Source: Perkinsela sp. CCAP 1560/9 (lineage: Eukaryota; Protista; Euglenozoa: Kinetoplastea). Taken from it: a DNA stretch of 64,000 nt. Location: positions 310,001 to 374,000 of the forward strand of contig CBFFSA010000002.1 in assembly GCA_965644495.1 (NCBI GenBank), written 5' to 3'. Below, one piece after another: positions 9,371 through 57,276 of the stretch (positions are counted from its first letter, which is position 1; each line of letters begins with the position of its first letter). The notes below the pieces were generated by a model. The model had not been told where the DNA came from. It ran no database searches and saw only the letters and a list, made by a program, of their open reading frames with translations. Both the position numbers and the translations under genes were made by a program.

Positions 9371-10001
9371 GTGTATCGAGTATTGGTGTTCGAAGAAGAT
9401 GCAAGAACGTTTACGAGATGGAAAAGTCTTTTTCTCCCTATGCCGAGAATTGAAATTCTTCATTTAGACTTCCTAAATTACGCACAGAGTACAGTATGCG
9501 GTTGTCCTAGTAAGGAGCCGGAATTCGTCTTCGAAGTCCGTTTGGGCTTCTGAGGATATTAAGTGTGGTAAAAATTATGACTTTGGGTTTATTGACGGAA
9601 GATGTTCAAGTTTGTCTCGTACGACGAAAATGTGTCAATTTAGTCCAAGGGAGGGGCGTCTATTCAGAAGGATACTTTGGGGGGTGGTTCTGAAAGATGT
9701 TGTCAGAGATCCGGTAGATAGAGAGCAGGTCAGAGAGATGGGGAAGAGGAGCCGGTTGCGGGGTCTGTTCTCCAAAAGATTAAAAGACTAAAAAATCTAA
9801 AGTACGATAAAAAGAAACTACGTACGAGCGCCAAGATCCGTCATAATACACAACCATTTCGTTTGTGGAGCGTCGCACACAGTGTGCGTGTGTTTTGCCC
9901 CACGACGCCGCTGTGGTCTATGTTGAGGAAATGGGAGGTGAAGCATTCATTCTATACCCGATACTACAAATAACATTAATGTCATAGAAAGCATATTAAG
10001 G

Positions 10002-10032
10002 CTTTGTGCAAAAATGAAGGAAATGCACAAAG
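10002..10032 (-). promoter_or_regulatory. Stem-loop downstream of H3 (9-bp stem, 13-nt pyrimidine-rich loop), repeated in each unit
   Basis: mRNA sense CUUUGUGCA-UUUCCUUCAUUUU-UGCACAAAG, 67 nt after the stop. Confidence 0.5.
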
Positions 10033-10099
10033 AACCTCAGATCGTTGCTGTCGTAGTGGGTATGCGAGGCTTCCCGAACTCAATAGTTTTCACAAACGC

Positions 10100-10528
10100 T
10101 TAGAAGCGTTCGCCGCGGAGACGGCGGGCGAGCTGGACGTCCTTCGGCATGATGGTTACCCGGCGACCGTGGATAGCGCACAGACAGGTGTCCGCGAACA
10201 AGTTGACCATGTGGGCCTCCGTTGCCTCCTGCATGGCGAGGACGGCGCTGGCTTGGAAACGCAGACCATCTTTGCCGCTGAGAGCAATCTCACGGACCAG
10301 ACGCTGGAAGGGAAGCTTGCGGAGGAGAAGTTCAGTGCCCTTCTGGTACTTTTTGATGTCACGGAGGGCAACGGTCCCCGGGCGAAAGCGGTGGGGCTTC
10401 TTGGTGCCACTGGAGCCGCTGGACGCTTTCTTCGCCTTGGAAGAGCTTGTCTTCTTGCCCTTGGAGGCGAGACCGGCGCGTGGTACCTTCCCCGTAGACT
10501 TACGAGACGATTCCTTGGTGCGAGCCAT
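10100..10528 (-). CDS. H3: Histone H3 (copy 1; GLASKG variant)
   Basis: MARTKE...[13 protein letters not shown]...[11 protein letters not shown]...[16 protein letters not shown]; true ATG at 10528. Confidence 0.97.
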
Positions 10529-10853
10529 GAGTGAAAATGAGGATAGATAGTAAAAATGTCTGGTTTTCAATAGAACAGGTTTCTTCGGTTTGTCACAATA
10601 AATTTTGAAAAGAGGGGCGAGCAATATCAAGAATGTACCTCACATAAGATGGAGCCGGTGCATGCATACATTCTCATAAGGTCATGAATACAGTGTAAAT
10701 CGTACTTGTCCGTCACAGAATGAAACTCACTGCTAAGTATACCTTAATAGTGAACACGACGGCTTTGTACGTTTGAATAACATTTTTTACAACAAAGTTC
10801 ATGACGATCGGATGCTGCACCTCTGCATGCTACCTGGTCGAACCACACAGCAT

Positions 10854-11180
10854 TTAGTGGGAGGCCAACTTGGCGACAGCCTTCGTGCCCTCAGCCATTG
10901 CGTGCTTTGCGAGCTCCGCGGGAAGAGTCAGGCGCACTGCGGTTTGTACTTCGCGGGAAGTCAACGTTTTGGTCTTGTTGAAGCGCGTGAGGGAGGCTGC
11001 CTCGACGGCAAGGCGCTCAAAGATGTCTTGCACGAAAGAGTTCACAACTTTGATCCCTTTGCTACTGAATCCCACGTTTTTGTGGATCTGCTTCAGGGTG
11101 CGGTAGATGTAGGTGTTGAAGGTTTTCTTGGACTTGCGGTGACCAGAGCTCTTCTTTGCGACTTTAGCTGCTTTCGCCAT
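10854..11180 (-). CDS. H2B: Histone H2B (copy 1)
   Basis: [15 protein letters not shown]...[30 protein letters not shown]. Confidence 0.97.
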
Positions 11181-11400
11181 GTGTTATAAAGTAGAGTAGG
11201 AGAAAAAGAAGGATAAGGGTGAAGAATTGAGGTTACGTAATGAACGGTTTAAGTTTTAGATGTATTAAGAACCGTGGTAAGTATCACCCACGCGATACTC
11301 CACCAGTATCCTAGTATGATATGCGTAATGTCGTTGATTGCATCCGCCGAAACTTCACAAAATGTAGCTCTACTGAGCCAAGGTACATGTCAATACATGC

Positions 11401-11437
11401 CTAGGATGGTGCATAAGAAAGGGAAGCACCATGCTAG
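11401..11437 (-). promoter_or_regulatory. Stem-loop downstream of H2A (7-bp core, 11 of 12 bp extended, 13-nt pyrimidine-rich loop), repeated in each unit
   Basis: mRNA sense CUAGCAUGGUGC-UUCCCUUUCUUAU-GCACCAUCCUAG. Confidence 0.5.
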
Positions 11438-11507
11438 AAGGATCTCACAAGGGTACCGATTGTGTGACGTGACGCGGGACAACGTATTATAACGCACTCA
11501 TTGCACC

Positions 11508-11906
11508 TTACACCTGTTGGCTGCTCGCCTTGCGGGATGCCTTCTTCTTCTTGAGCATGTCGTGAAGGTTGGGAAGTACGCCGCCCTGAGTGAAGGTGAC
11601 GTTGCTTAGCAGCTGAGAAAGCTCCTCGTCGTGACGGACGGCGAGTGTGACGGCACGAGGGGTAATACGCTTCTTGTGGTGCTGGCCCGCAACCTTACCG
11701 GAGAGCTCGAGAAGCTCGGCAGTGAGGTACTCCAACACAGCGGCGAGGTACACCGGGGCGGCGGAGGCCACACGCTTGGTGTAGCGTCCACGGCGGAGCA
11801 TGGAGCCGATGCGGCCCACGGGAAAGATCAGACCCGTCTTCGCGCCACGGCTCTTCTGGCTGCTCTTGGTGCTCTTCGCCTTCTTGCTGCTCTTCGGGGT
11901 AGCCAT
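11508..11906 (-). CDS. H2A: Histone H2A (copy 1)
   Basis: MATPK...GLIFPVGRI...[20 protein letters not shown]...RITPR...GGVLPN; true ATG at 11906. Confidence 0.97.
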
Positions 11907-12226
11907 AGTGATAGGAATAAGAGAGAAAAGTAATAAGAGTTCTTTCAAAAAATAGTAGTTGTTACGAATGAGTGAATGGACAAAGAAGACGTGATGTATT
12001 GCTTATGAGCGCATTATAGTTTTCTTACGAAGAGTTGATTCATAGGTCAATTGTTTTCTCCAAACGGCGGAATGTTTCAAGCGCTAGTATGATACCAGAG
12101 AAGCAACTCAAGACTCATACGAAAGAAATTGCGCACAGAAATGATTCACGGGGACAGAGAGAGAACCCGACGATTACCCTTGTGGAGATTCAGACCCGTT
12201 GCATCAACATGTGTTCAGTGTCATCC

Positions 12227-12535
12227 TTATGCGTATCCGTACAACATGCGTCCACGCTTGCGGAGAGCGTACACGACGTCGAGAGCAGTGACCGTCTGGC
12301 GCTTGCTGTGCTCAGTGTACGTCACGCTGTCACGGACAACGCCCTCCACGAAAGACTTGAGGATCCCACGGACCTCTTCGTACATGATTCCGCTGATGCG
12401 CTTGACACCACCACGGCGCGCAAGGCGGCGAATTGCGGGCTTTGTGATTCCGCGGATGTTGTCCTTCAATGCCTTCTTTTGGCGTTTCGTGCCGTGTGCG
12501 CCCTTAGCATCACCAGATTTCTTGCCTTTCGCCAT
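12227..12535 (-). CDS. H4: Histone H4 (copy 1)
   Basis: MAKGKK...[21 protein letters not shown]...[12 protein letters not shown]; true ATG at 12535. Confidence 0.97.
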
Positions 12536-12869
12536 TTGAAATGAATAGGAAGTAAGATGAAAAAATCTAAAGTACGATAAAAAGAAACTACGTACGAGCG
12601 CCAAGATCCGTCATAATACACAACCATTTCGTTTGTGGAGCGTCGCACACAGTGTGCGTGTGTTTTGCCCCACGACGCCGCTGTGGTCTATGTTGAGGGA
12701 ATGGGAGGTGAAGCATTCATCCTATACCCGATACTACAAATAACATTAATGTCATAGAAAGCATATTAAGGCTTTGTGCAAAAATGAAGGAAATGCACAA
12801 AGAACCTCCGATCGTTGCTGTCGTAGTGGGTATGCGAGGCTTCCCGAACTCAATGGATTTCACAAACGC

Positions 12870-13298
12870 TTAGAAGCGTTCGCCGCGGAGACGGCGGGCG
12901 AGCTGGACGTCCTTCGGCATAATGGTTACCCGGCGACCGTGGATAGCGCACAGACAGGTGTCCGCGAACAAGTTGACCATGTGGGCCTCCGTTGCCTCCT
13001 GCATGGCGAGGACGGCGCTGGCTTGGAAACGCAGACCATCTTTGCCGCTGAGAGCAATCTCACGGACCAGACGCTGGAAGGGAAGCTTGCGGAGGAGAAG
13101 TTCAGTGCCCTTCTGGTACTTTTTGATGTCACGGAGGGCGACGGTCCCCGGGCGAAAGCGGTGGGGTTTCTTGGTGCCACTGGAGCCGCTGGACGCTTTC
13201 TTCGCCTTGGAAGAGCTTGTCTTCTTGCCTTTGGAGACGAGACCAGCGCGTGGTACCTTCCCCGTAGATTTACGAGACGATTCCTTGGTGCGAGCCAT
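12870..13298 (-). CDS. H3: Histone H3 (copy 2)
   Basis: Array copy. Confidence 0.97.
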
Positions 13299-13629
13299 GA
13301 GTGAAAATGAGGATAGATAGTAAAAATGTCTGGTTTTCAATAGAACAGGTTTCTTCGGTTTGTCACAATAAATTTTGAAAAGAGGGGCGAGCAATATCAA
13401 GAATGTACCTCACATAAGATGGAGCCGGTGCATGCATACATTCTCATAAGGTCATGAATACAGTGTAAATCGTACTTGTCCGTCACAGAATGAAACTCAC
13501 TGCTAAGTATACCTTAATAGTGAACACGACGGCTTTGTACGTTTGAATAACATTTTTTACAACAAAGTTCGAACAAATGACGATCGGATGCTGCACCTCT
13601 GCATGCTACCTGGTCGAACCACACAGCAT

Positions 13630-13956
13630 TTAGTGGGAGGCCAACTTGGCGACAGCCTTCGTGCCCTCAGCCATTGCGTGCTTTGCGAGCTCCGCGGGAA
13701 GAGTCAGGCGCACTGCGGTTTGTACTTCGCGGGAAGTCAACGTTTTGGTCTTGTTGAAGCGCGTGAGGGAGGCTGCCTCGACGGCAAGGCGCTCAAAGAT
13801 GTCTTGCACGAAAGAGTTCACAACTTTGATCCCTTTGCTACTGAATCCCACGTTTTTGTGGATCTGCTTCAGGGTGCGGTAGATGTAGGTGTTGAAGGTT
13901 TTCTTGGACTTGCGGTGACCAGAGCTCTTCTTTGCGACTTTAGCTGCTTTCGCCAT
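13630..13956 (-). CDS. H2B: Histone H2B (copy 2)
   Basis: Array copy. Confidence 0.97.
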
Positions 13957-14280
13957 GTGTTATAAAGTAGAGTAGGAGAAAAAGAAGGATAAGGGTGAAG
14001 AATTGAGGTTACGTAATGAACGGTTTAAGTTTTACATGTATTGAGAACCGTGGTAAGTATCACCCACGCGATACTCCACCAGTATCCTAGTATGATGTGC
14101 GCAATGTCGTTGATTGCATCCGCCGAAACTTCACAAAATGTAGCTCTACTGAGCCAAGGTACATGTCAATACATGCCTAGGATGGTGCATAAGAAAGGGA
14201 AGCACCATGCTAGAAGGATCTCACAAGGGTACCGATTGTGTGACGTGACGCGGGACGTATTATAACGCACTCATTGCACC

Positions 14281-14679
14281 TTACACCTGTTGGCTGCTCG
14301 CCTTGCGGGATGCCTTCTTCTTCTTGAGCATGTCGTGAAGGTTGGGAAGTACGCCGCCCTGAGTGAAGGTGACGTTGCTTAGCAGCTGAGAAAGCTCCTC
14401 GTCGTGACGGACGGCGAGTGTGACGGCACGAGGGGTAATACGCTTCTTATGGTGCTGGCCCGCAACCTTACCGGAGAGCTCGAGAAGCTCGGCAGTGAGG
14501 TACTCCAACACAGCGGCGAGGTACACCGGGGCGGCGGAGGCCACACGCTTGGTGTAGCGTCCACGGCGGAGCATGGAGCCGATGCGGCCCACGGGAAAGA
14601 TCAGACCCGTCTTCGCGCCACGGCTCTTCTGGCTGCTCTTGGTGCTCTTCGCCTTCTTGCTGCTCTTCGGGGTAGCCAT
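14281..14679 (-). CDS. H2A: Histone H2A (copy 2)
   Basis: Array copy. Confidence 0.97.
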
Positions 14680-14999
14680 AGTGATAGGAATAAGAGAGAA
14701 AAGTAATAAGAGTTCTTTCAAAAAATAGTAGTTGTTACGAATGAGTGAATGGACAAATAAGACGTGATGTATTGCTTATGAGCGCATTATAGTTTTCTTA
14801 CGAAGAGTTGATTCATAGGTCAATTGTTTTCTCCAAACGGCGGAATGTTTCAAGCGCTAGTATGATACCAGAGAAGCAACTCAAGACTCATACGAAAGAA
14901 ATTGCGCACAGAAATGATTCACGGGGACAGAGAGAGAACCCGACGATTACCCTTGTGGAGATTCAGACCCATTGCATCAACATGTGTTCAGTGTCATCC

Positions 15000-15308
15000 T
15001 TATGCGTATCCGTACAACATGCGTCCACGCTTGCGGAGAGCGTACACGACGTCGAGAGCAGTGACCGTCTGGCGCTTGCTGTGCTCAGTGTACGTCACGC
15101 TGTCACGGACAACGCCCTCCACGAAAGACTTGAGGATCCCACGGACCTCTTCGTACATGATTCCGCTGATGCGCTTGACACCACCACGGCGCGCAAGGCG
15201 GCAAATTGCGGGCTTTGTGATTCCGCGGATGTTGTCCTTCAATGCCTTCTTTTGGCGTTTCGTGCCGTGTGCGCCCTTAGCATCACCAGATTTCTTGCCT
15301 TTCGCCAT
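15000..15308 (-). CDS. H4: Histone H4 (copy 2; R>C in PAICRLA)
   Basis: Array copy; substitution at 15203. Confidence 0.96.
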
Positions 15309-15642
15309 TTGAAATGAATAGGAAGTAAGATGAAAAAATCTAAAGTACGATAAAAAGAAACTACGTACGAGCGCCAAGATCCGTCATAATACACAACCAT
15401 TTCGTTTGTGGAGCGTCGCACACAGTGTGCGTGTGTTTTGCCCCACGACGCCGCTGTGGTCTATGTTGAGGGAATGGGAGGTGAAGCATTCATTCTATAC
15501 CCGATACTACAAATAACATTAATGTCATAGAAAGCATATTAAGGCTTTGTGCAAAAATGAAGGAAATGCACAAAGAACCTCAGATCGTTGCTGTCGTAGT
15601 GGGTATGCGAGGCTTCCCGAACTCAATGGATTTCACAAACGC

Positions 15643-16071
15643 TTAGAAGCGTTCGCCGCGGAGACGGCGGGCGAGCTGGACGTCCTTCGGCATGATGGTT
15701 ACCCGGCGACCGTGGATAGCGCACAGACAGGTGTCCGCGAACAAGTTGACCATGTGGGCCTCCGTTGCCTCCTGCATGGCGAGGACGGCGCTGGCTTGGA
15801 AACGCAGACCATCTTTGCCGCTGAGAGCAATCTCACGGACCAGACGCTGGAAGGGAAGCTTGCGGAGGAGAAGTTCAGTGCCCTTCTGGTACTTTTTGAT
15901 GTCACGGAGGGCGACGGTCCCCGGGCGAAAGCGGTGGGGTTTCTTGGTGCCACTGGAGCCGCTGGACGCTTTCTTCGCCTTGGAAGAGCTTGTCTTCTTG
16001 CCTTTGGAGACGAGACCAGCGCGTGGTACCTTCCCCGTAGATTTACGAGACGATTCCTTGGTGCGAGCCAT
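15643..16071 (-). CDS. H3: Histone H3 (copy 3)
   Basis: Array copy. Confidence 0.97.
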
Positions 16072-16402
16072 GAGTGAAAATGAGGATAGATAGTAAAAAT
16101 GTCTGGTTTTCAATAGAACAGGTTTCTTCGGTTTGTCACAATAAATTTTGAAAAGAGGGGTGAGCAATATCAAGAATGTACCTCACATAAGATGGAGCCG
16201 GTGCATGCATGCATTCTCATAGTGTCATGAATACAGTGTAAATCGTACTTGTCCGTCACAGAATGAAACTCACTGCTAAGTATACCTTAATAGTGAACAC
16301 GACGGCTTTGTACGTTTGAATAACATTTTTTACAACAAAGTTCGAACAAATGACGATCGGATGCTGCACCTCTGCATGCTACCTGGTCGAACCACACAGC
16401 AT

Positions 16403-16729
16403 TTAGTGGGAGGCCAACTTGGCGACAGCCTTCGTTCCCTCAGCCATTGCGTGCTTTGCGAGCTCCGCGGGAAGAGTCAGGCGCACTGCGGTTTGTACTT
16501 CGCGGGAAGTCAACGTTTTGGTCTTGTTGAAGCGCGTGAGGGAGGCTGCCTCGACGGCAAGGCGCTCAAAGATGTCTTGCACGAAAGAGTTCACAACTTT
16601 GATCCCTTTGCTGCTGAATCCCACGTTTTTGTGGATCTGCTTCAGGGTGCGGTAGATGTAGGTGTTGAAGGTCTTCTTGGACTTGCGGTGACCAGAGCTC
16701 TTCTTTGCGACTTTAGCTGCTTTCGCCAT
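16403..16729 (-). CDS. H2B: Histone H2B (copy 3)
   Basis: Array copy. Confidence 0.97.
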
Positions 16730-17053
16730 GTGTTATAAAGTAGAGTAGGAGAAAAAGAAGGATAAGGGCGAAGAATTGAGGTTACGTAATGAACGGTTTA
16801 AGTTTTACATGTATTGAGAACCGTGGTAAGTATCACCCACGCGATACTCCACCAGTATCCTAGTATGATGTGCGCAATGTCGTTGATTGCATCCGCCGAA
16901 ACTTCACAAAATGTAGCTCTACTGAGCCAAGGTACATGTCAATACATGCCTAGGATGGTGCATAAGAAAGGGAAGCACCATGCTAGAAGGATCTCACAAG
17001 GGTACCGATTGTGTGACGTGACGCGGGACGTATTATAACGCACTCATTGCACC

Positions 17054-17452
17054 TTACACCTGTTGGCTGCTCGCCTTGCGGGATGCCTTCTTCTTCTTGA
17101 GCATGTCGTGAAGGTTGGGAAGTACGCCGCCCTGAGTGAAGGTGACGTTGCTTAGCAGCTGAGAAAGCTCCTCGTCGTGACGGACGGCGAGTGTGACGGC
17201 ACGAGGGGTAATACGCTTCTTATGGTGCTGGCCCGCAACCTTACCGGAGAGCTCGAGAAGCTCGGCAGTGAGGTACTCCAACACAGCGGCGAGGTACACC
17301 GGGGCGGCGGAGGCCACACGCTTGGTGTAGCGTCCACGGCGGAGCATGGAGCCGATGCGGCCCACGGGAAAGATCAGACCCGTCTTCGCGCCACGGCTCT
17401 TCTGGCTGCTCTTGATGCTCTTCGCCTTCTTGCTGCTCTTCGGGGTAGCCAT
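17054..17452 (-). CDS. H2A: Histone H2A (copy 3; KSIKSS allele)
   Basis: Array copy. Confidence 0.97.
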
Positions 17453-17772
17453 AGTGATAGGAATAAGAGAGAAAAGTAATAAGAGTTCTTTCAAAAAATA
17501 GTAGTTGTTACGAATGAGTGAATGGACAAATAAGACGTGATGTATTGCTTATGAGCGCATTATAGTTTTCTTACGAAGAGTTGATTCATAGGTCAATTGT
17601 TTTCTCCAAACGGCGGAATGTTTCAAGCGCTAGTATGATACCAGAGAAGCAACTCAAGACTCATACGAAAGAAATTGCGCACAGAAATGATTCACGGGGA
17701 CAGAGAGAGAACCCGACGATTACCCTTGTGGAGATTCAGACCCGTTGCATCAACATGTGTTCAGTGTCATCC

Positions 17773-18081
17773 TTATGCGTATCCGTACAACATGCGTCCA
17801 CGCTTGCGGAGAGCGTACACGACGTCGAGAGCAGTGACCGTCTGGCGCTTGCTGTGCTCAGTGTACGTCACGCTGTCACGGACAACGCCCTCCACGAAAG
17901 ACTTGAGGATCCCACGGACCTCTTCGTACATGATTCCGCTGATGCGCTTGACACCACCACGGCGCGCAAGGCGGCGAATTGCGGGCTTTGTGATTCCGCG
18001 GATGTTGTCCTTCAATGCCTTCTTTTGGCGTTTCGTGCCGTGTGCGCCCTTAGCATCACCAGATTTCTTGCCTTTCGCCAT
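17773..18081 (-). CDS. H4: Histone H4 (copy 3)
   Basis: Array copy. Confidence 0.97.
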
Positions 18082-18415
18082 TTGAAATGAATAGGAAGTA
18101 AGATGAAAAAATCTAAAGTACGATAAAAAGAAACTACGTACGAGCGCCAAGATCCGTCATAATACACAACCATTTCGTTTGTGGAGCGTCGCACACAGTG
18201 TGCGTGTGTTTTGCCCCACGACGCCGCTGTGGTCTATGTTGAGGGAATGGGAGGTGAAGCATTCATTCTATACCCGATACTACAAATAACATTAATGTCA
18301 TAGAAAGCATATTAAGGCTTTGTGCAAAAATGAAGGAAATGCACAAAGAACCTCAGATCGTTGCTGTCGTAGTGGGTATGCGAGGCTTCCCGAACTCAAT
18401 GGATTTCACAAACGC

Positions 18416-18844
18416 TTAGAAGCGTTCGCCGCGGAGACGGCGGGCGAGCTGGACGTCCTTCGGCATGATGGTTACCCGGCGACCGTGGATAGCGCACAGA
18501 CAGGTGTCCGCGAACAAGTTGACCATGTGGGCCTCCGTTGCCTCCTGCATGGCGAGGACGGCGCTGGCTTGGAAACGCAGACCATCTTTGCCGCTGAGAG
18601 CAATCTCACGGACCAGACGCTGGAAGGGAAGCTTGCGGAGGAGAAGTTCAGTGCCCTTCTGGTACTTTTTGATGTCACGGAGGGCAACGGTCCCCGGGCG
18701 AAAGCGGTGGGGTTTCTTGGTGCCACTGGAGCCGCTGGACGCTTTCTTCGCCTTGGAAGAGCTTGTCTTCTTGCCTTTGGAGACGAGACCAGCGCGTGGT
18801 ACCTTCCCCGTAGATTTACGAGACGATTCCTTGGTGCGAGCCAT
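18416..18844 (-). CDS. H3: Histone H3 (copy 4)
   Basis: Array copy. Confidence 0.97.
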
Positions 18845-31311: not shown

Positions 31312-31630
31312 AGTGATAGGAATAAGAGAGAAAAGTAATAAGAGTTCTTTCAAAAAATAGTAGTTGTTACGAATGAGTGAATGGACAAATAAGACGTGAT
31401 GTATTGCTTATGAGCGCATTATAGTTTTCTTACGAAGAGTTGATTCATAGGTCAATTGTTTTCTCCAAACGGCGGAATGTTTCAAGCGCTAGTATGATAC
31501 CAGAGAAGCAACTCAAGACTCATACGAAAGAAAATGCGCACAGAAATGATTCACGGGGACAGAGAGAGAACCCGACGATTACCCTTGTGGAGATCAGACC
31601 CGTTGCATCAACATGTGTTCAGTGTCATCC

Positions 31631-31939
31631 TTATGCGTATCCGTACAACATGCGTCCACGCTTGCGGAGAGCGTACACGACGTCGAGAGCAGTGACCGTC
31701 TGGCGCTTGCTGTGCTCAGTGTACGTCACGCTGTCACGGACAACGCCCTCCACGAAAGACTTGAGGATCCCACGGACCTCTTCGTACATGATTCCGCTGA
31801 TGCGCTTGACACCACCACGGCGCGCAAGGCGGCGAATTGCGGGCTTTGTGATTCCGCGGATGTTGTCCTTCAATGCCTTCTTTTGGCGTTTCGTGCCGTG
31901 TGCGCCCTTAGCATCACCAGATTTCTTGCCTTTCGCCAT
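31631..31939 (-). CDS. H4: Histone H4 (copy 8)
   Basis: Array copy. Confidence 0.97.
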
Positions 31940-32268
31940 TTGAAATGAATAGGAAGTAAGATGAAAAAATCTAAAGTACGATAAAAGAAACTACGTACGA
32001 GCGCCAAGATCCGTCATAATACACAACCATTTCGTTTGTGGAGCGTCGCACACAGTGTGCGTGTGTTTTGCCCCACGACGCCGCTGTGGTCTATGTTGAG
32101 GAATGGGAGGTGAAGCATTCATCCTATACCCGATACTACAAATAACATTAATGTCATAGAAAGCATATTAGGCTTTGTGCAAAAATGAAGGAAATGCACA
32201 AAGAACCTCAGATCGTTGCTGTCGTAGTGGGTATGCGAGCTTCCCGAACTCATGGATTTCACAAACGC

Positions 32269-32697
32269 TTAGAAGCGTTCGCCGCGGAGACGGCGGGCGA
32301 GCTGGACGTCCTTCGGCATGATGGTTACCCGGCGACCGTGGATAGCGCACAGACAGGTGTCCGCGAACAAGTTGACCATGTGGGCCTCCGTTGCCTCCTG
32401 CATGGCGAGGACGGCGCTGGCTTGGAAACGCAGACCATCTTTGCCGCTGAGAGCAATCTCACGGACCAGACGCTGGAAGGGAAGCTTGCGGAGGAGAAGT
32501 TCAGTGCCCTTCTGGTACTTTTTGATGTCACGGAGGGCGACGGTCCCCGGGCGAAAGCGGTGGGGCTTCTTGGTGCCACTGGAGCCGCTGGACGCTTTCT
32601 TCGCCTTGGAAGAGCTTGTCTTCTTGCCTTTGGAGACGAGACCAGCGCGTGGTACCTTCCCCGTAGATTTACGAGACGATTCCTTGGTGCGAGCCAT
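32269..32697 (-). CDS. H3: Histone H3 (copy 9)
   Basis: Array copy. Confidence 0.97.
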
Positions 32698-33019
32698 GAG
32701 TGAAAATGAGGATAGATAGTAAAAATGTCTGGTTTTCAATAGAACACGTTTTTTCGGTTTGTCACAATAATTTTGAAAAGAGGGGCGAGCAATATCAAGA
32801 ATGTACCTCACATAAGATGGAGCCGGTGCATGCATGCATTCTCATAGTGTCATGAATACAGTGTAAATCGTACTTGTCCGTCACAGAATGAAACTCACTG
32901 CTAAGTATACCTTAATAGTGAACACGACGGCTTTGTACGTTGAATAACATTTTTTACAACAAAGTCATGACGATCGGATGCTGCACCTCTGCATGCTACC
33001 TGGTCGAACCACACAGCAT

Positions 33020-33346
33020 TTAGTGGGAGGCCAACTTGGCGACAGCCTTCGTGCCCTCAGCCATTGCGTGCTTTGCGAGCTCCGCGGGAAGAGTCAGGCG
33101 CACTGCGGTTTGTACTTCGCGGGAAGTCAACGTTTTGGTCTTGTTGAAGCGCGTGAGGGAGGCTGCCTCGACGGCAAGGCGCTCAAAGATGTCTTGCACG
33201 AAAGAGTTCACAACTTTGATCCCTTTGCTGCTGAATCCCACGTTTTTGTGGATCTGCTTCAGGGTGCAGTAGATGTAGGTGTTGAAGGTCTTCTTGGACT
33301 TGCGGTGACCAGAGCTCTTCTTTGCGACTTTAGCTGCTTTCGCCAT
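33020..33346 (-). CDS. H2B: Histone H2B (copy 9; R>C in YIYCTLK)
   Basis: Array copy; substitution at 33268. Confidence 0.96.
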
Positions 33347-33673
33347 GTGTTATAAAGTAGAGTAGGAGAAAAAGAAGGATAAGGGCGAAGAATTGAGATT
33401 ACGTAATAAACGGTTTAAGTTTTACATGTATTGAGAACCGTGGTAAGTATCACCCACGCGATACTCCACCAGTATCCTAGTATGATGTGCGCAATGTCGT
33501 TGATTGCATCCGCCGAAACTTCACAAAATGTAGCTCTACTGAGCCAAGGTACATGTCAATACATGCCTAGGATGGTGCATAAGAAAGGGAAGCACCATGC
33601 TAGAAGGATCTCACAAGGGTACCGATTGTGTGACGTGACGCGGGACAACGTATTATAACGCACTCATTGCACC

Positions 33674-34072
33674 TTACACCTGTTGGCTGCTCGCCTTGCG
33701 GGATGCCTTCTTCTTCTTGAGCATGTCGTGAAGGTTGGGAAGTACGCCGCCCTGAGTGAAGGTGACGTTGCTTAGCAGCTGAGAAAGCTCCTCGTCGTGA
33801 CGGACGGCGAGTGTGACGGCACGAGGGGTAATACGCTTCTTGTGGTGCTGGCCCGCAACCTTACCGGAGAGCTCGAGAAGCTCGGCAGTGAGGTACTCCA
33901 ACACAGCGGCGAGGTACACCGGGGCGGCGGAGGCCACACGCTTGGTGTAGCGTCCACGGCGGAGCATGGAGCCGATGCGGCCCACGGGAAAGATCAGACC
34001 CGTCTTCGCGCCACGGCTCTTCTGGCTGCTCTTGATGCTCTTCGCCTTCTTGCTGCTCTTCGGGGTAGCCAT
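33674..34072 (-). CDS. H2A: Histone H2A (copy 9; KSIKSS allele)
   Basis: Array copy. Confidence 0.97.
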
Positions 34073-40575: not shown

Positions 40576-41002
40576 TTAGAAGCGTTCGCCGCGGAGACGG
40601 CGGGCGAGCTGGACGTCCTTCGGCATGATGGTTACCCGGCGACCGTGGATAGCGCACAGACAGGTGTCCGCGAACAAGTTGACCATGTGGGCCTCCGTTG
40701 CCTCCTGCATGGCGAGGACGGCGCTGGCTTGGAAACGCAGACCATCTTTGCCGCTGAGAGCAATCTCACGGACCAGACGCTGGAAGGGAAGCTTGCGGAG
40801 GAGAAGTTCAGTGCCCTTCTGGTACTTTTTGATGTCACGGAGGGCGACGGTCCCGGGCGAAAGCGGTGGGGCTTCTTGGTGCCACTGGAGCCGCTGGACG
40901 CTTTCTTCGCCTTGGAAGAGCTGTCTTCTTGCCTTTGGAGACGAGACCGGCGCGTGGTACCTTCCCCGTAGATTTACGAGACGATTCCTTGGTGCGAGCC
41001 AT
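40576..41002 (-). pseudogene. H3: Histone H3 (copy 12), frameshifted by two 1-bp deletions (pseudogene or consensus error)
   Basis: tcccggg instead of tccccggg (about 40853) and gagctgtc instead of gagcttgtc (about 40922); 427 bp instead of 429 bp. Confidence 0.85.
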
Positions 41003-41327
41003 GAGTGAAAATGAGGATAGATAGTAAAAGTGTCTGGTTTTCAATAGAACACGTTTTTTCGGTTTGTCACAATAAATTTTGAAAAGAGGGGCGAGCAATA
41101 TCAAGAATGTACCTCACATAAGATGGAGCCGGTGCATGCATACATTCTCATAATGTCATGAATATAGTGTAAATCGTACTTGTCCGTCACAGAATGAAAC
41201 TCACTGCTAAGTATACCTTAATAGTGAACACGACGGCTTTGTACGTTTGAATAACATTTTTTACAACAAAGTTCATGACGATCGGATGCTGCACCTCTGC
41301 ATGCTACCTGGTCGAACCACACAGCAT

Positions 41328-41654
41328 TTAGTGGGAGGCCAACTTGGCGACAGCCTTCGTTCCCTCAGCCATTGCGTGCTTTGCGAGCTCCGCGGGAAGA
41401 GTCAGGCGCACTGCGGTTTGTACTTCGCGGGAAGTCAACGTTTTGGTCTTGTTGAAGCGCGTGAGGGAGGCTGCCTCGACGGCAAGGCGCTCAAAGATGT
41501 CTTGCACGAAAGAGTTCACAACTTTGATCCCTTTGCTGCTGAATCCCACGTTTTTGTGGATCTGCTTCAGGGTGCGGTAGATGTAGGTGTTGAAGGTCTT
41601 CTTGGACTTGCGGTGACCAGAGCTCTTCTTTGCGACTTTAGCTGCTTTCGCCAT
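41328..41654 (-). CDS. H2B: Histone H2B (copy 12)
   Basis: Array copy. Confidence 0.97.
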
Positions 41655-41978
41655 GTGTTATAAAGTAGAGTAGGAGAAAAAGAAGGATAAGGGCGAAGAA
41701 TTGAGATTACGTAATGAACGGTTTAAGTTTTACATGTATTGAGAACCGTGGTAAGTATCACCCACGCGATACTCCACCAGTATCCTAGTATGATGTGCGC
41801 AATGTCGTTGATTGCATCCGCCGAAACTTCACAAAATGTAGCTCTACTGAGCCAAGGTACATGTCAATACATGCCTAGGATGGTGCATAAGAAAGGGAAG
41901 CACCATGCTAGAAGGATCTCACAAGGGTACCGATTGTGTGACGTGACGCGGGACGTATTATAACGCACTCATTGCACC

Positions 41979-42377
41979 TTACACCTGTTGGCTGCTCGCC
42001 TTGCGGGATGCCTTCTTCTTCTTGAGCATGTCGTGAAGGTTGGGAAGTACGCCGCCCTGAGTGAAGGTGACGTTGCTTAGCAGCTGAGAAAGCTCCTCGT
42101 CGTGACGGACGGCGAGTGTGACGGCACGAGGGGTAATACGCTTCTTGTGGTGCTGGCCCGCAACCTTACCGGAGAGCTCGAGAAGCTCGGCAGTGAGGTA
42201 CTCCAACACAGCGGCGAGGTACACCGGGGCGGCGGAGGCCACACGCTTGGTGTAGCGTCCACGGCGGAGCATGGAGCCGATGCGGCCCACGGGAAAGATC
42301 AGACCCGTCTTCGCGCCACGGCTCTTCTGGCTGCTCTTGGTGCTCTTCGCCTTCTTGCTGCTCTTCGGGGTAGCCAT
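41979..42377 (-). CDS. H2A: Histone H2A (copy 12)
   Basis: Array copy. Confidence 0.97.
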
Positions 42378-42697
42378 AGTGATAGGAATAAGAGAGAAAA
42401 GTAATAAGAGTTCTTTCAAAAAATAGTAGTTGTTACGAATGAGTGAATGGACAAAGAAGACGTGATGTATTGCTTATGAGCACATTATAGTTTTCTTACG
42501 AAGAGTTGATTCATAGGTCAATTGTTTTCTCCAAACGGCGGAATGTTTCAAGCGCTAGTATGATACCAGAGAAGCAACTCAAGACTCATACGAAAGAAAA
42601 TGCGCACAGAAATGATTCACGGGGACAGAGAGAGAACCCGACGATTACCCTTGTGGAGATTCAGACCCGTTGCATCAACATGTGTTCAGTGTCATCC

Positions 42698-43006
42698 TTA
42701 TGCGTATCCGTACAACATGCGTCCACGCTTGCGGAGAGCGTACACGACGTCGAGAGCAGTGACCGTCTGGCGCTTGCTGTGCTCAGTGTACGTCACGCTG
42801 TCACGGACAACGCCCTCCACGAAAGACTTGAGGATCCCACGGACCTCTTCGTACATGATTCCGCTGATGCGCTTGACACCACCACGGCGCGCAAGGCGGC
42901 GAATTGCGGGCTTTGTGATTCCGCGGATGTTGTCCTTCAATGCCTTCTTTTGGCGTTTCGTGCCGTGTGCGCCCTTAGCATCACCAGATTTCTTGCCTTT
43001 CGCCAT
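42698..43006 (-). CDS. H4: Histone H4 (copy 12)
   Basis: Array copy. Confidence 0.97.
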
Positions 43007-43340
43007 TTGAAATGAATAGGAAGTAAGATGAAAAAATCTAAAGTACGATAAAAAGAAACTACGTACGAGCGCCAAGATCCGTCATAATACACAACCATTT
43101 CGTTTGTGGAGCGTCGCACACAGTGTGCGTGTGTTTTGCCCCACGACGCCGCTGTGGTCTATGTTGAGGGAATGGGAGGTGAAGCATTCATTCTATACCC
43201 GATACTACAAATAACATTAATGTCATAGAAAGCATATTAAGGCTTTGTGCAAAAATGAAGGAAATGCACAAAGAACCTCAGATCGTTGCTGTCGTAGTGG
43301 GTATGCGAGGCTTCCCGAACTCAATGGATTTCACAAACGC

Positions 43341-43769
43341 TTAGAAGCGTTCGCCGCGGAGACGGCGGGCGAGCTGGACGTCCTTCGGCATGATGGTTAC
43401 CCGGCGACCGTGGATAGCGCACAGACAGGTGTCAGCGAACAAGTTGACCATGTGGGCCTCCGTTGCCTCCTGCATGGCGAGGACGGCGCTGGCTTGGAAA
43501 CGCAGACCATCTTTGCCGCTGAGAGCAATCTCACGGACCAGACGCTGGAAGGGAAGCTTGCGGAGGAGAAGTTCAGTGCCCTTCTGGTACTTTTTGATGT
43601 CACGGAGGGCGACGGTCCCCGGGCGAAAGCGGTGGGGCTTCTTGGTGCCACTGGAGCCGCTGGACGCTTTCTTCGCCTTGGAAGAGCTTGTCTTCTTGCC
43701 TTTGGAGACGAGACCGGCGCGTGGTACCTTCCCCGTAGATTTACGAGACGATTCCTTGGTGCGAGCCAT
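43341..43769 (-). CDS. H3: Histone H3 (copy 13)
   Basis: Array copy. Confidence 0.97.
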
Positions 43770-44094
43770 GAGTGAAAATGAGGATAGATAGTAAAAGTGT
43801 CTGGTTTTCAATAGAACACGTTTTTTCGGTTTGTCACAATAAATTTTGAAAAGAGGGGCGAGCAATATCAAGAATGTACCTCACATAAGATGGAGCCGGT
43901 GCATGCATACATTCTCATAATGTCATGAATATAGTGTAAATCGTACTTGTCCGTCACAGAATGAAACTCACTGCTAAGTATACCTTAATAGTGAACACGA
44001 CGGCTTTGTACGTTCGAATAACATTTTTTACAACAAAGTTCATGACGATGGCATGCTGCACCTCTGCATGCTACCTGGTCGAACCACACAGCAT

Positions 44095-44421
44095 TTAGTG
44101 GGAGGCCAACTTGGCGACAGCCTTCGTTCCCTCAGCCATTGCGTGCTTTGCGAGCTCCGCGGGAAGAGTCAGGCGCACTGCGGTTTGTACTTCGCGGGAA
44201 GTCAACGTTTTGGTCTTGTTGAAGCGCGTGAGGGAGGCTGCCTCGACGGCAAGGCGCTCAAAGATGTCTTGCACGAAAGAGTTCACAACTTTGATCCCTT
44301 TGCTGCTGAATCCCACGTTTTTGTGGATCTGCTTCAGGGTGCGGTAGATGTAGGTGTTGAAGGTCTTCTTGGACTTGCGGTGACCAGAGCTCTTCTTTGC
44401 GACTTTAGCTGCTTTCGCCAT
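44095..44421 (-). CDS. H2B: Histone H2B (copy 13)
   Basis: Array copy. Confidence 0.97.
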
Positions 44422-44745
44422 GTGTTATAAAGTAGAGTAGGAGAAAAAGAAGGATAAGGGCGAAGAATTGAGATTACGTAATGAACGGTTTAAGTTTTAC
44501 ATGTATTGAGAACCGTGGTAAGTATCACCCACGCGATACTCCACCAGTATCCTAGTATGATGTGCGCAATGTCGTTGATTGCATCCGCCGAAACTTCACA
44601 AAATGTAGCTCTACTGAGCCAAGGTACATGTCAATACATGCCTAGGATGGTGCATAAGAAAGGGAAGCACCATGCTAGAAGGATCTCACAAGGGTACCGA
44701 TTGTGTGACGTGACGCGGGACGTATTATAACGCACTCATTGCACC

Positions 44746-45144
44746 TTACACCTGTTGGCTGCTCGCCTTGCGGGATGCCTTCTTCTTCTTGAGCATGTCG
44801 TGAAGGTTGGGAAGTACGCCGCCCTGAGTGAAGGTGACGTTGCTTAGCAGCTGAGAAAGCTCCTCGTCGTGACGGACGGCGAGTGTGACGGCACGAGGGG
44901 TAATACGCTTCTTGTGGTGCTGGCCCGCAACCTTACCGGAGAGCTCGAGAAGCTCGGCAGTGAGGTACTCCAACACAGCGGCGAGGTACACCGGGGCGGC
45001 GGAGGCCACACGCTTGGTGTAGCGTCCACGGCGGAGCATGGAGCCGATGCGGCCCACGGGAAAGATCAGACCCGTCTTCGCGCCACGGCTCTTCTGGCTG
45101 CTCTTGGTGCTCTTCGCCTTCTTGCTGCTCTTCGGGGTAGCCAT
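44746..45144 (-). CDS. H2A: Histone H2A (copy 13)
   Basis: Array copy. Confidence 0.97.
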
Positions 45145-45464
45145 AGTGATAGGAATAAGAGAGAAAAGTAATAAGAGTTCTTTCAAAAAATAGTAGTTGT
45201 TACGAATGAGTGAATGGACAAAGAAGACGTGATGTATTGCTTATGAGCACATTATAGTTTTCTTACGAAGAGTTGATTCATAGGTCAATTGTTTTCTCCA
45301 AACGGCGGAATGTTTCAAGCGCTAGTATGATACCAGAGAAGCAACTCAAGACTCATACGAAAGAAAATGCGCACAGAAATGATTCACGGGGACAGAGAGA
45401 GAACCCGACGATTACCCTTGTGGAGATTCAGACCCGTTGCATCAACATGTGTTCAGTGTCATCC

Positions 45465-45773
45465 TTATGCGTATCCGTACAACATGCGTCCACGCTTGCG
45501 GAGAGCGTACACGACGTCGAGAGCAGTGACCGTCTGGCGCTTGCTGTGCTCAGTGTACGTCACGCTGTCACGGACAACGCCCTCCACGAAAGACTTGAGG
45601 ATCCCACGGACCTCTTCGTACATGATTCCGCTGATGCGCTTGACACCACCACGGCGCGCAAGGCGGCGAATTGCGGGCTTTGTGATTCCGCGGATGTTGT
45701 CCTTCAATGCCTTCTTTTGGCGTTTCGTGCCGTGTGCGCCCTTAGCATCACCAGATTTCTTGCCTTTCGCCAT
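45465..45773 (-). CDS. H4: Histone H4 (copy 13)
   Basis: Array copy. Confidence 0.97.
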
Positions 45774-46107
45774 TTGAAATGAATAGGAAGTAAGATGAAA
45801 AAATCTAAAGTACGATAAAAAGAAACTACGTACGAGCGCCAAGATCCGTCATAATACACAACCATTTCGTTTGTGGAGCGTCGCACACAGTGTGCGTGTG
45901 TTTTGCCCCACGACGCCGCTGTGGTCTATGTTGAGGGAATGGGAGGTGAAGCATTCATTCTATACCCGATACTACAAATAACATTAATGTCATAGAAAGC
46001 ATATTAAGGCTTTGTGCAAAAATGAAGGAAATGCACAAAGAACCTCAGATCGTTGCTGTCGTAGTGGGTATGCGAGGCTTCCCGAACTCAATGGATTTCA
46101 CAAACGC

Positions 46108-46536
46108 TTAGAAGCGTTCGCCGCGGAGACGGCGGGCGAGCTGGACGTCCTTCGGCATGATGGTTACCCGGCGACCGTGGATAGCGCACAGACAGGTGTC
46201 AGCGAACAAGTTGACCATGTGGGCCTCCGTTGCCTCCTGCATGGCGAGGACGGCGCTGGCTTGGAAACGCAGACCATCTTTGCCGCTGAGAGCAATCTCA
46301 CGGACCAGACGCTGGAAGGGAAGCTTGCGGAGGAGAAGTTCAGTGCCCTTCTGGTACTTTTTGATGTCACGGAGGGCGACGGTCCCCGGGCGAAAGCGGT
46401 GGGGCTTCTTGGTGCCACTGGAGCCGCTGGACGCTTTCTTCGCCTTGGAAGAGCTTGTCTTCTTGCCTTTGGAGACGAGACCGGCGCGTGGTACCTTCCC
46501 CGTAGATTTACGAGACGATTCCTTGGTGCGAGCCAT
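46108..46536 (-). CDS. H3: Histone H3 (copy 14)
   Basis: Array copy. Confidence 0.97.
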
Positions 46537-46861
46537 GAGTGAAAATGAGGATAGATAGTAAAAGTGTCTGGTTTTCAATAGAACACGTTTTTTCGGTTTG
46601 TCACAATAAATTTTGAAAAGAGGGGCGAGCAATATCAAGAATGTACCTCACATAAGATGGAGCCGGTGCATGCATACATTCTCATAATGTCATGAATATA
46701 GTGTAAATCGTACTTGTCCGTCACAGAATGAAACTCACTGCTAAGTATACCTTAATAGTGAACACGACGGCTTTGTACGTTCGAATAACATTTTTTACAA
46801 CAAAGTTCATGACGATGGCATGCTGCACCTCTGCATGCTACCTGGTCGAACCACACAGCAT

Positions 46862-47188
46862 TTAGTGGGAGGCCAACTTGGCGACAGCCTTCGTTCCCTC
46901 AGCCATTGCGTGCTTTGCGAGCTCCGCGGGAAGAGTCAGGCGCACTGCGGTTTGTACTTCGCGGGAAGTCAACGTTTTGGTCTTGTTGAAGCGCGTGAGG
47001 GAGGCTGCCTCGACGGCAAGGCGCTCAAAGATGTCTTGCACGAAAGAGTTCACAACTTTGATCCCTTTGCTGCTGAATCCCACGTTTTTGTGGATCTGCT
47101 TCAGGGTGCGGTAGATGTAGGTGTTGAAGGTCTTCTTGGACTTGCGGTGACCAGAGCTCTTCTTTGCGACTTTAGCTGCTTTCGCCAT
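46862..47188 (-). CDS. H2B: Histone H2B (copy 14)
   Basis: Array copy. Confidence 0.97.
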
Positions 47189-47512
47189 GTGTTATAAAGT
47201 AGAGTAGGAGAAAAAGAAGGATAAGGGCGAAGAATTGAGGTTACGTAATGAACGGTTTAAGTTTTACATGTATTGAGAACCGTGGTAAGTATCACCCACG
47301 CGATACTCCACCAGTATCCTAGTATGATGTGCGCAATGTCGTTGATTGCATCCGCCGAAACTTCACAAAATGTAGCTCTACTGAGCCAAGGTACATGTCA
47401 ATACATGCCTAGGATGGTGCATAAGAAAGGGAAGCACCATGCTAGAAGGATCTCACAAGGGTACCGATTGTGTGACGTGACGCGGGACGTATTATAACGC
47501 ACTCATTGCACC

Positions 47513-47911
47513 TTACACCTGTTGGCTGCTCGCCTTGCGGGATGCCTTCTTCTTCTTGAGCATGTCGTGAAGGTTGGGAAGTACGCCGCCCTGAGTGAAG
47601 GTGACGTTGCTTAGCAGCTGAGAAAGCTCCTCGTCGTGACGGACGGCGAGTGTGACGGCACGAGGGGTAATACGCTTCTTGTGGTGCTGGCCCGCAACCT
47701 TACCGGAGAGCTCGAGAAGCTCGGCAGTGAGGTACTCCAACACAGCGGCGAGGTACACCGGGGCGGCGGAGGCCACACGCTTGGTGTAGCGTCCACGGCG
47801 GAGCATGGAGCCGATGCGGCCCACGGGAAAGATCAGACCCGTCTTCGCGCCACGGCTCTTCTGGCTGCTCTTGGTGCTCTTCGCCTTCTTGCTGCTCTTC
47901 GGGGTAGCCAT
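47513..47911 (-). CDS. H2A: Histone H2A (copy 14)
   Basis: Array copy. Confidence 0.97.
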
Positions 47912-48231
47912 AGTGATAGGAATAAGAGAGAAAAGTAATAAGAGTTCTTTCAAAAAATAGTAGTTGTTACGAATGAGTGAATGGACAAAGAAGACGTGAT
48001 GTATTGCTTATGAGCACATTATAGTTTTCTTACGAAGAGTTGATTCATAGGTCAATTGTTTTCTCCAAACGGCGGAATGTTTCAAGCGCTAGTATGATAC
48101 CAGAGAAGCAACTCAAGACTCATACGAAAGAAAATGCGCACAGAAATGATTCACGGGGACAGAGAGAGAACCCGACGATTACCCTTGTGGAGATTCAGAC
48201 CCGTTGCATCAACATGTGTTCAGTGTCATCC

Positions 48232-48540
48232 TTATGCGTATCCGTACAACATGCGTCCACGCTTGCGGAGAGCGTACACGACGTCGAGAGCAGTGACCGT
48301 CTGGCGCTTGCTGTGCTCAGTGTACGTCACGCTGTCACGGACAACGCCCTCCACGAAAGACTTGAGGATCCCACGGACCTCTTCGTACATGATTCCGCTG
48401 ATGCGCTTGACACCACCACGGCGCGCAAGGCGGCGAATTGCGGGCTTTGTGATTCCGCGGATGTTGTCCTTCAATGCCTTCTTTTGGCGTTTCGTGCCGT
48501 GTGCGCCCTTAGCATCACCAGATTTCTTGCCTTTCGCCAT
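48232..48540 (-). CDS. H4: Histone H4 (copy 14)
   Basis: Array copy. Confidence 0.97.
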
Positions 48541-48874
48541 TTGAAATGAATAGGAAGTAAGATGAAAAAATCTAAAGTACGATAAAAAGAAACTACGTAC
48601 GAGCGCCAAGATCCGTCATAATACACAACCATTTCGTTTGTGGAGCGTCGCACACAGTGTGCGTGTGTTTTGCCCCACGACGCCGCTGTGGTCTATGTTG
48701 AGGGAATGGGAGGTGAAGCATTCATCCTATACCCGATACTACAAATAACATTAATGTCATAGAAAGCATATTAAGGCTTTGTGCAAAAATGAAGGAAATG
48801 CACAAAGAACCTCAGATCGTTGCTGTCGTAGTGGGTATGCGAGGCTTCCCGAACTCAATGGATTTCACAAACGC

Positions 48875-49303
48875 TTAGAAGCGTTCGCCGCGGAGACGGC
48901 GGGCGAGCTGGACGTCCTTCGGCATGATGGTTACCCGGCGACCGTGGATAGCGCACAGACAGGTGTCAGCGAACAAGTTGACCATGTGGGCCTCCGTTGC
49001 CTCCTGCATGGCGAGGACGGCGCTGGCTTGGAAACGCAGACCATCTTTGCCGCTGAGAGCAATCTCACGGACCAGACGCTGGAAGGGAAGCTTGCGGAGG
49101 AGAAGTTCAGTGCCCTTCTGGTACTTTTTGATGTCACGGAGGGCGACGGTCCCCGGGCGAAAGCGGTGGGGCTTCTTGGTGCCACTGGAGCCGCTGGACG
49201 CTTTCTTCGCCTTGGAAGAGCTTGTCTTCTTGCCTTTGGAGACGAGACCGGCGCGTGGTACCTTCCCCGTAGATTTACGAGACGATTCCTTGGTGCGAGC
49301 CAT
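48875..49303 (-). CDS. H3: Histone H3 (copy 15)
   Basis: Array copy. Confidence 0.97.
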
Positions 49304-49628
49304 GAGTGAAAATGAGGATAGATAGTAAAAATGTCTGGTTTTCAATAGAACACGTTTTTTCGGTTTGTCACAATAAATTTTGAAAAGAGGGGCGAGCAAT
49401 ATCAAGAATGTACCTCACATAAGATGGAGCCGGTGCATGCATACATTCTCATAATGTCATGAATATAGTGTAAATCGTACTTGTCCGTCACAGAATGAAA
49501 CTCACTGCTAAGTATACCTTAATAGTGAACACGACGGCTTTGTACGTTTGAATAACATTTTTTACAACAAAGTTCATGACGATCGGATGCTGCACCTCTG
49601 CATGCTACCTGGTCGAACCACACAGCAT

Positions 49629-49955
49629 TTAGTGGGAGGCCAACTTGGCGACAGCCTTCGTTCCCTCAGCCATTGCGTGCTTTGCGAGCTCCGCGGGAAG
49701 AGTCAGGCGCACTGCGGTTTGTACTTCGCGGGAAGTCAACGTTTTGGTCTTGTTGAAGCGCGTGAGGGAGGCTGCCTCGACGGCAAGGCGCTCAAAGATG
49801 TCTCGCACGAAAGAGTTCACAACTTTGATCCCTTTGCTGCTGAATCCCACGTTTTTGTGGATCTGCTTCAGGGTGCGGTAGATGTAGGTGTTGAACGTCT
49901 TCTTGGACTTGCGGTGACCAGAGCTCTTCTTTGCGACTTTAGCTGCTTTCGCCAT
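49629..49955 (-). CDS. H2B: Histone H2B (copy 15; Q>R in FVRDIF)
   Basis: Array copy; substitution at 49804. Confidence 0.96.
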
Positions 49956-50282
49956 GTGTTATAAAGTAGAGTAGGAGAAAAAGAAGGATAAGGGCGAAGA
50001 ATTGAGGTTACGTAATGAACGGTTTAAGTTTTACATGTATTGAGAACCGTGGTAAGTATCACCCACGCGATACTCCACCAGTATCCTAGTATGATGTGCG
50101 CAATGTCGTTGATTGCATCTGCCGAAACTTCACAAAATGTAGCTCTACTGAGCCAAGGTACATGTCAATACATGCCTAGGATGGTGCATAAGAAAGGGAA
50201 GCACCATGGTAGAAGGATTTCACAAGGGTACCGATTGTGTGACGTGACGCGGGCCAACGTATTATAACGCACTCATTGCACC

Positions 50283-50672
50283 TTACACCTGTTGGCTGCT
50301 CGCCTTGCGGGATGCCTTCTTCTTCTTGAGCATGTCGTGAAGGTTGGGAAGTACGCCGCCCTGAGTGAAGGTGACGTTGCTTAGCAGCTGAGAAAGCTCC
50401 TCGTCGTGACGGACGGCGAGTGTGACGGCACGAGGGGTAATACGCTTCTTGTGGTGCTGGCCCGCAACCTTACCGGAGAGCTCGAGAAGCTCGGCAGTGA
50501 GGTACTCCAACACAGCGGCGAGGTACACCGGGGCGGCGGAGGCCACACGCTTGGTGTAGCGTCCACGGCGGAGCATGGAGCCGATGCGGCCCACGGGAAA
50601 GATCAGACCCGTCTTCGCGCCACGGCTCTTCTGGCTGCTCTTCGCCTTCTTGCTGCTCTTCGGGGTAGCCAT
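50283..50672 (-). CDS. H2A: Histone H2A (copy 15, first in transcription; N-tail 3 aa shorter, unique upstream sequence)
   Basis: [18 protein letters not shown] (129 aa against 132 aa in the other copies). Confidence 0.96.
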
Positions 50673-57274: not shown

Positions 57275-57276
57275 TA

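Follow-up and report, generated by a model that had tools for sequence, protein, structure and literature searches.

A 41-kb tandem array of co-oriented core-histone quartets in a Perkinsela-like kinetoplastid and its bearing on the ancestral histone gene layout

Tandem histone genes are known in two closely comparable forms, namely the one-type arrays of trypanosomatids and the mixed repeats of animals. In Trypanosoma brucei and Trypanosoma cruzi, each histone type has a separate tandem array, and H4 of T. brucei reaches about 43 copies per diploid genome (10.1101/2025.03.21.644654). Trypanosomatid arrays are co-directional, lie in polycistrons, set dosage by copy number and are accompanied by single-copy variants elsewhere. 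In metazoans such as Drosophila and sea urchin, head-to-tail repeats of the four core histones (quartets, or quintets) evolve in concert and are the main source of canonical histones. Here, we describe a tandem array of all four core histones in a 64,000-nucleotide stretch of Perkinsela sp. CCAP 1560/9 (GCA_965644495.1, contig CBFFSA010000002.1, positions 310,001 to 374,000, forward strand), hereafter referred to as the window. We consider it likely that the canonical (replication-type) core histones of the organism are encoded by this array, and that it was built from an old kinetoplastid quartet module that was tandemly amplified here and broken up in trypanosomatids.

Other mixed arrangements are known. 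Fungal H2A-H2B and H3-H4 pairs, for example, are divergently transcribed. These pairs, together with the histone clusters of Chlamydomonas and Volvox, also represent mixed linkage outside animals, but they are pairs or clusters of 3-8 genes rather than long repeats (PMC13525598). A 2025 study traced adjacencies between different histone types back to the last eukaryotic common ancestor and called successive quartets and quintets specific to Metazoa (PMC12507687). In a 2026 review covering over 250 species, the word "kinetoplast" is absent and trypanosomes are cited for H1 only (PMC13525598); the main texts of the genome papers on Perkinsela (PMC5601477) and on free-living prokinetoplastids are without the word "histone". 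No published description of mixed histone clusters in kinetoplastids was found in the literature searched, most subscription papers being outside the search, and a preliminary description of the window, made from its sequence alone, was likewise aware of none. A precedent does exist for tubulin: in Trypanosoma and bodonids, alpha- and beta-tubulin genes alternate in a mixed tandem array of complex partners, an arrangement that is ancestral, with monotypic arrays derived (PMC1621084).

The array lies on the minus strand and comprises 15 H2A, 15 H2B, 15 H3 and 14 H4 genes, 58 of the 59 being intact. In each unit the order is H2A>H2B>H3>H4, with histone types assigned by Pfam, and the products are 132, 108, 142 and 102 amino acids long, respectively. 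The 15 H2A genes start at 50672, 47911, 45144 ... 11906, at intervals of 2,761-2,773 bp, and the intergenic spacers inside the unit measure about 320-335 bp. Neither H1 nor a variant histone gene lies within the unit. The layout given in the preliminary description (41 kb, units of about 2.77 kb, 59 genes, no H1 or variant) is borne out by these data. Homology between units ends at 9790, 7 nt beyond the AG found ahead of H4 in the remaining units; the H4 acceptor retained after the last H3 would preserve 3' end formation of that H3.

Within 84 kb around the array, 22 of 22 open reading frames (ORFs) of at least 200 amino acids lie on the minus strand, so that the array sits, as had been noted, in a same-strand cluster of intronless genes, here of at least 84 kb. 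Flanking genes include GlnRS, MutS, CCT1, Vps16, SNAP and SCO1. The GC content at third codon positions (GC3) is 0.69-0.80 in the array histones vs 0.38-0.43 in flanking genes. The 21-Mb assembly was searched for further canonical core-histone loci and none was found; the other histones are four single-copy, divergent, variant-like genes (one each of H2A, H2B, H3 and H4) at separate loci. They may correspond to the single-copy H2A.Z, H2B.V, H3.V and H4.V of trypanosomatids, which likewise lie apart from the canonical arrays. H1 was not found with one bodonid-type query, which is not evidence of absence because H1 is of low complexity.

All 14 full units are distinct, with 1-24 substitutions between pairs. 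The difference between units increases with their distance (Mantel r=0.80, p<1e-4), and the near-identical neighbours 2/3, 8/9 and 10/11 differ by 1-3 substitutions. Coding variants comprise 14 synonymous and 5 non-synonymous changes (proportions of synonymous and non-synonymous differences, pS 0.040 and pN 0.0045). Of 253 informative site pairs, 84 fail the four-gamete test, the pattern that crossover or conversion among units would produce. With similarity decay, recombination and purifying selection all present, the array evolves as a concerted tandem array; the unequal crossover proposed in the preliminary description fits the gradient. Because unit difference rises with distance and purifying selection is evident, the array looks real on internal evidence, though its exact copy number could be off.

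Sequence comparisons identify the source organism as a prokinetoplastid of the Perkinsela kind. In a quick tree, CCT1 falls in a clade of six that includes Perkinsela CCAP1560/4, with an SH-like approximate likelihood ratio test (SH-aLRT) value of 100, in agreement with the kinetoplastid identity first suggested. The concatenated-histone tree places the organism with prokinetoplastids (ultrafast bootstrap, UFBoot, 92), and the best full-length H3 match in a named organism is Perkinsela (82%). The nearest relative in histone trees is the marine contig L025, not CCAP1560/4. A spliced-leader (SL)-like motif, derived from PMC7859406, has 517 genomic occurrences vs 10 for the control. About 500 dispersed copies of an SL-like 14-mer, mostly of one fixed variant, are spread genome-wide and suggest retroposed SL-bearing elements. 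The assembly also holds two unlike 18S rRNA genes (C58:32767-34872 and C11:510796-512820), of which the C58 copy looks non-kinetoplastid; the two would fit a symbiont plus a trace of its host. We presume that the C58 gene possibly comes from an amoebozoan host.

Four-histone units on one strand are widespread among prokinetoplastids. Perkinsela CCAP1560/4 (GCA_001235845.1), in which the histone loci are annotated, also has a co-oriented quartet, which differs from the array in its order, H3>H4>H2B>H2A (6 of 7 H3 loci), and in consisting of solitary units spread over several loci, not of one long array. The same circular order is seen at three loci on megabase contigs of ERZ25071330 (H2B>H2A>H3>H4). 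Tandem units are found in L025 (H3>H2B>H2A>H4, 3.6 kb) and in prokinetoplastid contigs grouping with Apiculatamorpha (H2A>H2B>H4>H3, some with a lysine-rich HMG-box gene). From their sample series, we take the latter contigs to be freshwater. Of the prokinetoplastid loci of scorable length, nearly all have a mixed co-oriented unit.

A metagenome scan yielded 31 contigs with metakinetoplastid-type H2A, about 20 of them independent. A different core histone adjoins H2A on the same strand in 26 of the 31, and H2A-H2A pairs are seen in none (0/31). All four core histones are present on L076, L079, L091 and L134, the first of which repeats H3>H1>H4>H2B>H2A. Arrays of H2A alone are present in T. brucei (13 H2A in the assembly) and Leptomonas (3 H2A), in keeping with the separate arrays ascribed to trypanosomatids at the outset, and in contig L034. 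No histone could be assigned to Bodo saltans, whose genome lay outside the search. In the concatenated histone tree, mixed units occur both in Prokinetoplastina and in Metakinetoplastina (UFBoot 89 and 96), the two sides of the deepest division among kinetoplastids, and over all loci five of the six possible circular gene orders are seen, on a single strand in every case. An irregular unit without H2B on contig L130 has the look of an intermediate in such shuffling. Five contigs from unidentified eukaryotes (L060, L069, L071, L075 and L077) carry co-oriented mixed clusters of canonical-type histones, and the layout thus reaches beyond kinetoplastids.

Several of these clusters contain additional genes. 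Small H1-like genes, rich in lysine, alanine and proline codons, are embedded in histone clusters of the metakinetoplastid type, forming quintets (L063, L064, L076, L087, L062 and L083). Some prokinetoplastid units (L129:2527-2961, L131, L132 and L065) encode a lysine-rich protein whose HMG box is C-terminal and which is possibly a linker-histone substitute. An HMG-box gene with a mitochondrial-type presequence follows the CCAP1560/4 quartets (L011:12171-12686, L014 and L017); the array genome has about nine weak homologues of it, mostly on C4.

Given its presence at almost all of the prokinetoplastid loci examined and on several contigs of the metakinetoplastid type, the simplest reading of the quartet is that it is ancestral to kinetoplastids, and the one-type layout of trypanosomatids is probably derived. 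The order of the module would have been shuffled between lineages, probably via partial duplication and loss within tandem arrays, which is the simplest account because order changes without inversions; trypanosomatids would then have split the module into one-type arrays. As with tubulin, a mixed array would have been split in a derived lineage, but the histone unit has four (or five) genes, not two, its order varies between lineages, and its split appears older than the Trypanosoma/Leishmaniinae divergence. It is important to note what weighs against this reading. Gene order varies across the tree; many metakinetoplastid-type contigs show H2A-H2B dimers only, and the one-type array of L034 falls outside the trypanosomatid clade, so that the module must have been broken up more than once. 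In addition, the metakinetoplastid evidence consists of short metagenome contigs, the trypanosomatid layout was checked directly at H2A loci and taken from papers for the other histones, and the histone trees are short-gene trees of modest support.

The array resembles the animal repeat in gene content and concerted evolution. It differs in its position inside a same-strand housekeeping cluster, in a unit without H1, and in mRNAs that are presumably trans-spliced and polyadenylated instead of being promoter-driven. The full unit has no match to the Rfam histone 3' untranslated region (UTR) stem-loop at E values up to 10, and the conserved metazoan stem-loop has a 6-bp stem and a 4-nt loop, whereas the hairpins of the array have 13-nt loops. 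The animal type is further marked by a promoter for each gene, by mRNAs that lack poly(A) tails and by a histone locus body. The array is not a member of the animal system, and it contradicts the claim that successive quartets are specific to Metazoa (PMC12507687). Compared with trypanosomatid arrays, the difference is in the unit, which holds four histone types rather than one.

An explanation compatible with ancestry is that of a dosage-locked "nucleosome operon", in which, without gene-specific promoters, a one-of-each unit would be selected for equal output through copy-number change. As for the 1:1:1:1 dosage put forward in the preliminary description, gene copy number conforms to it by construction. 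That selection keeps it for this reason would be plausible, and we regard the explanation as a serious possibility, somewhat short of an even chance. It agrees with the retention of composition and strand while order varies, with the presence of the whole quartet at several unlinked loci in CCAP1560/4 and ERZ25071330, and with the reported tendency of co-complex subunits to adjoin in Leishmania major polycistrons (2026 preprint, 10.64898/2026.07.29.740908). However, trypanosomatids manage with H2A-only arrays and with the numerous H4 copies of T. brucei in arrays of their own (10.1101/2025.03.21.644654), Leishmania controls histone synthesis at translation via UTRs (PMC2691400), and a lone H3 (L012) and H2A-H2B dimers exist. 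The four array spacers also share no 7-mer, and their shared 5- and 6-mers are within the shuffle range.

The preliminary description regarded the repeat as convergent. Its kinetoplastid placement, directional cluster and crossover are upheld by our analysis; its convergent origin is not supported, given the co-oriented units of prokinetoplastid and metakinetoplastid-type loci. Lineage-specific assembly of the repeat from separate arrays, once here or several times in kinetoplastids, would account for the differing gene orders, for an order H2A>H2B>H3>H4 not seen in the other loci examined, and for the one-type and dimer arrays among metakinetoplastid-type contigs. But it would require four genes to be gathered on one strand many times, against a mixed unit at nearly every scorable prokinetoplastid locus and on several metakinetoplastid-type branches, and L076 and Perkinsela share a circular order, a weak point with one chance in six; we therefore judge it unlikely. 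Less probable still is a real quartet for which mis-assembly, by over-expansion, collapse or the merging of haplotypes, would account for the length of 15 copies. Both unit 7 and the unit-4 H3 do bear 1-nt deletions typical of long-read consensus error, but the full units are all distinct, most alike when adjacent and mostly synonymous in their variants, each array edge is unique and joined to single-copy DNA, and independent samples also hold tandem quartets.

As for expression, kinetoplastid biology suggests that the array is most likely transcribed by polymerase II read-through within the surrounding polycistron, and that SL trans-splicing with coupled polyadenylation in the spacers would yield single mRNAs. 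A pyrimidine-rich stretch (65-80%) precedes each histone ATG. In two places, a strong pyrimidine tract is accompanied by a long AG-free interval: 117 nt before the H2B start (47189-47305) and about 150 nt upstream of the SNAP start (60237). Copy number would set histone output, and unequal crossover and gene conversion would expand, shrink and homogenise whole units, the four genes shifting together. By analogy with Leishmania (PMC2691400), S-phase control of the array histones is probably post-transcriptional.

A pyrimidine-loop hairpin is clear in the 3' spacers of H2A and H3, weak in that of H4 and absent from that of H2B, and some relatives carry similar hairpins. Enrichment in histone spacers was found at one setting (9/23 vs 16/143 controls, p=0.002) and at a loose setting chosen post hoc (17/23 vs 32/143), but it was not significant at the setting taken from the array (2/23 vs 4/143). 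Because enrichment depends on settings, the hairpin as a lineage-wide element is only a lead. The genome encodes an SLBP RNA-binding domain once (PF15247, E 2.5e-25), in a 441-aa ORF (C16:146353-146568); the trypanosome homologue of this protein is without an assigned function (10.1101/2022.05.10.491326). The fullest version of the dosage idea, in which the quartet (a quintet with H1 in some) would be an ancestral, selection-kept, dosage-locked polycistronic module with mRNAs co-regulated by the hairpin and its binding by the SLBP-domain protein, is in our view improbable.

Other short motifs were observed in relatives. In the CCAP1560/4-like lineage (L011, L013, L018, L023 and L041), all 10 histone flanks have GTTTA no more than 140 nt from the stop codon vs 9 of 65 controls, a post hoc comparison; it is absent from the array spacers. 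Of 24 histone flanks of the metakinetoplastid type (L063, L068, L080 and L054), 9 carry the motif (C/A/G)ATAGA close to the stop codon; this motif, we presume, resembles a trypanosomatid cell-cycle element.

Coordinates are collected in Table 1. The 1-nt deletions of unit 7 and of the unit-4 H3 look like consensus errors; for the H3 frameshift this is probable, the alternative being that the gene is possibly a pseudogene. A 25-bp tandem repeat of about 10 copies (9117-9374) lies shortly beyond the downstream edge of the array, where long ORFs are absent. The frame of the MutS-family gene is continuous on either side of its in-frame TAG, which may be a nonsense allele or a consensus error. Synteny of H2A and MutS with Leptomonas was considered and rejected, as the MutS proteins match weakly. 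A weak match to a DDE_3 (Tc1-like) transposase lies at 57256-57702.

Table 1. Features of the histone array and its surroundings (window coordinates; aa, amino acids)
Feature	Position	Strand	Remarks
Tandem array H2A-H2B-H3-[H4-H2A-H2B-H3]x14	9790..50672	-	59 genes; unit 2,761-2,773 bp
First H2A	50283..50672	-	129 aa; 9-bp deletion in N-terminal tail; own upstream region; downstream of CCT1
H2A of unit 2	47513..47911	-	132 aa; kinetoplastid-type [13 protein letters not shown]; GC3 0.80
H2B of unit 2	46862..47188	-	108 aa
H3 of unit 2	46108..46536	-	142 aa; 82% identity to Perkinsela CCAP1560/4 H3
H4 of unit 2	45465..45773	-	102 aa; kinetoplastid-type MAKGKKS start
H3 of unit 4	about 40576..41002	-	Frameshift from two 1-nt deletions in short base runs
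Unit 7	31312..34072	-	Nine 1-nt deletions, all in spacers, mostly in identical-base runs
Last, partial unit (H2A, H2B, H3; without H4)	9790..11906	-	Stops just beyond the pyrimidine tract and AG preceding H4 in other units
H2A 3' spacer hairpin	47414..47440	-	7-bp stem, 13-nt pyrimidine loop; z -2.8 (window chosen around hairpin); candidate 3' UTR element
H3 3' spacer hairpin	46010..46040	-	9-bp stem, 13-nt pyrimidine loop; z -3.6 (window chosen around hairpin); candidate 3' UTR element
CCT1	51102..52787	-	Upstream neighbour; used for organism placement
MutS-family gene	4909..7536	-	First long ORF downstream; in-frame TAG at 5785-5787

Two generalisations are overturned by these loci, namely that long tandem four-histone repeats belong to animals alone and that kinetoplastids normally keep each histone type in an array of its own. 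The significance of the array lies in genome evolution, not in a new molecular machine. If the quartet is ancestral, the polarity of the trait would be reversed, and the trypanosomatid arrays would become the derived state, as with tubulin. The series of tandem quartets, dispersed quartets, H2A-H2B dimers and one-type arrays may serve as a natural test of stoichiometry-driven adjacency in genomes without gene-specific promoters.

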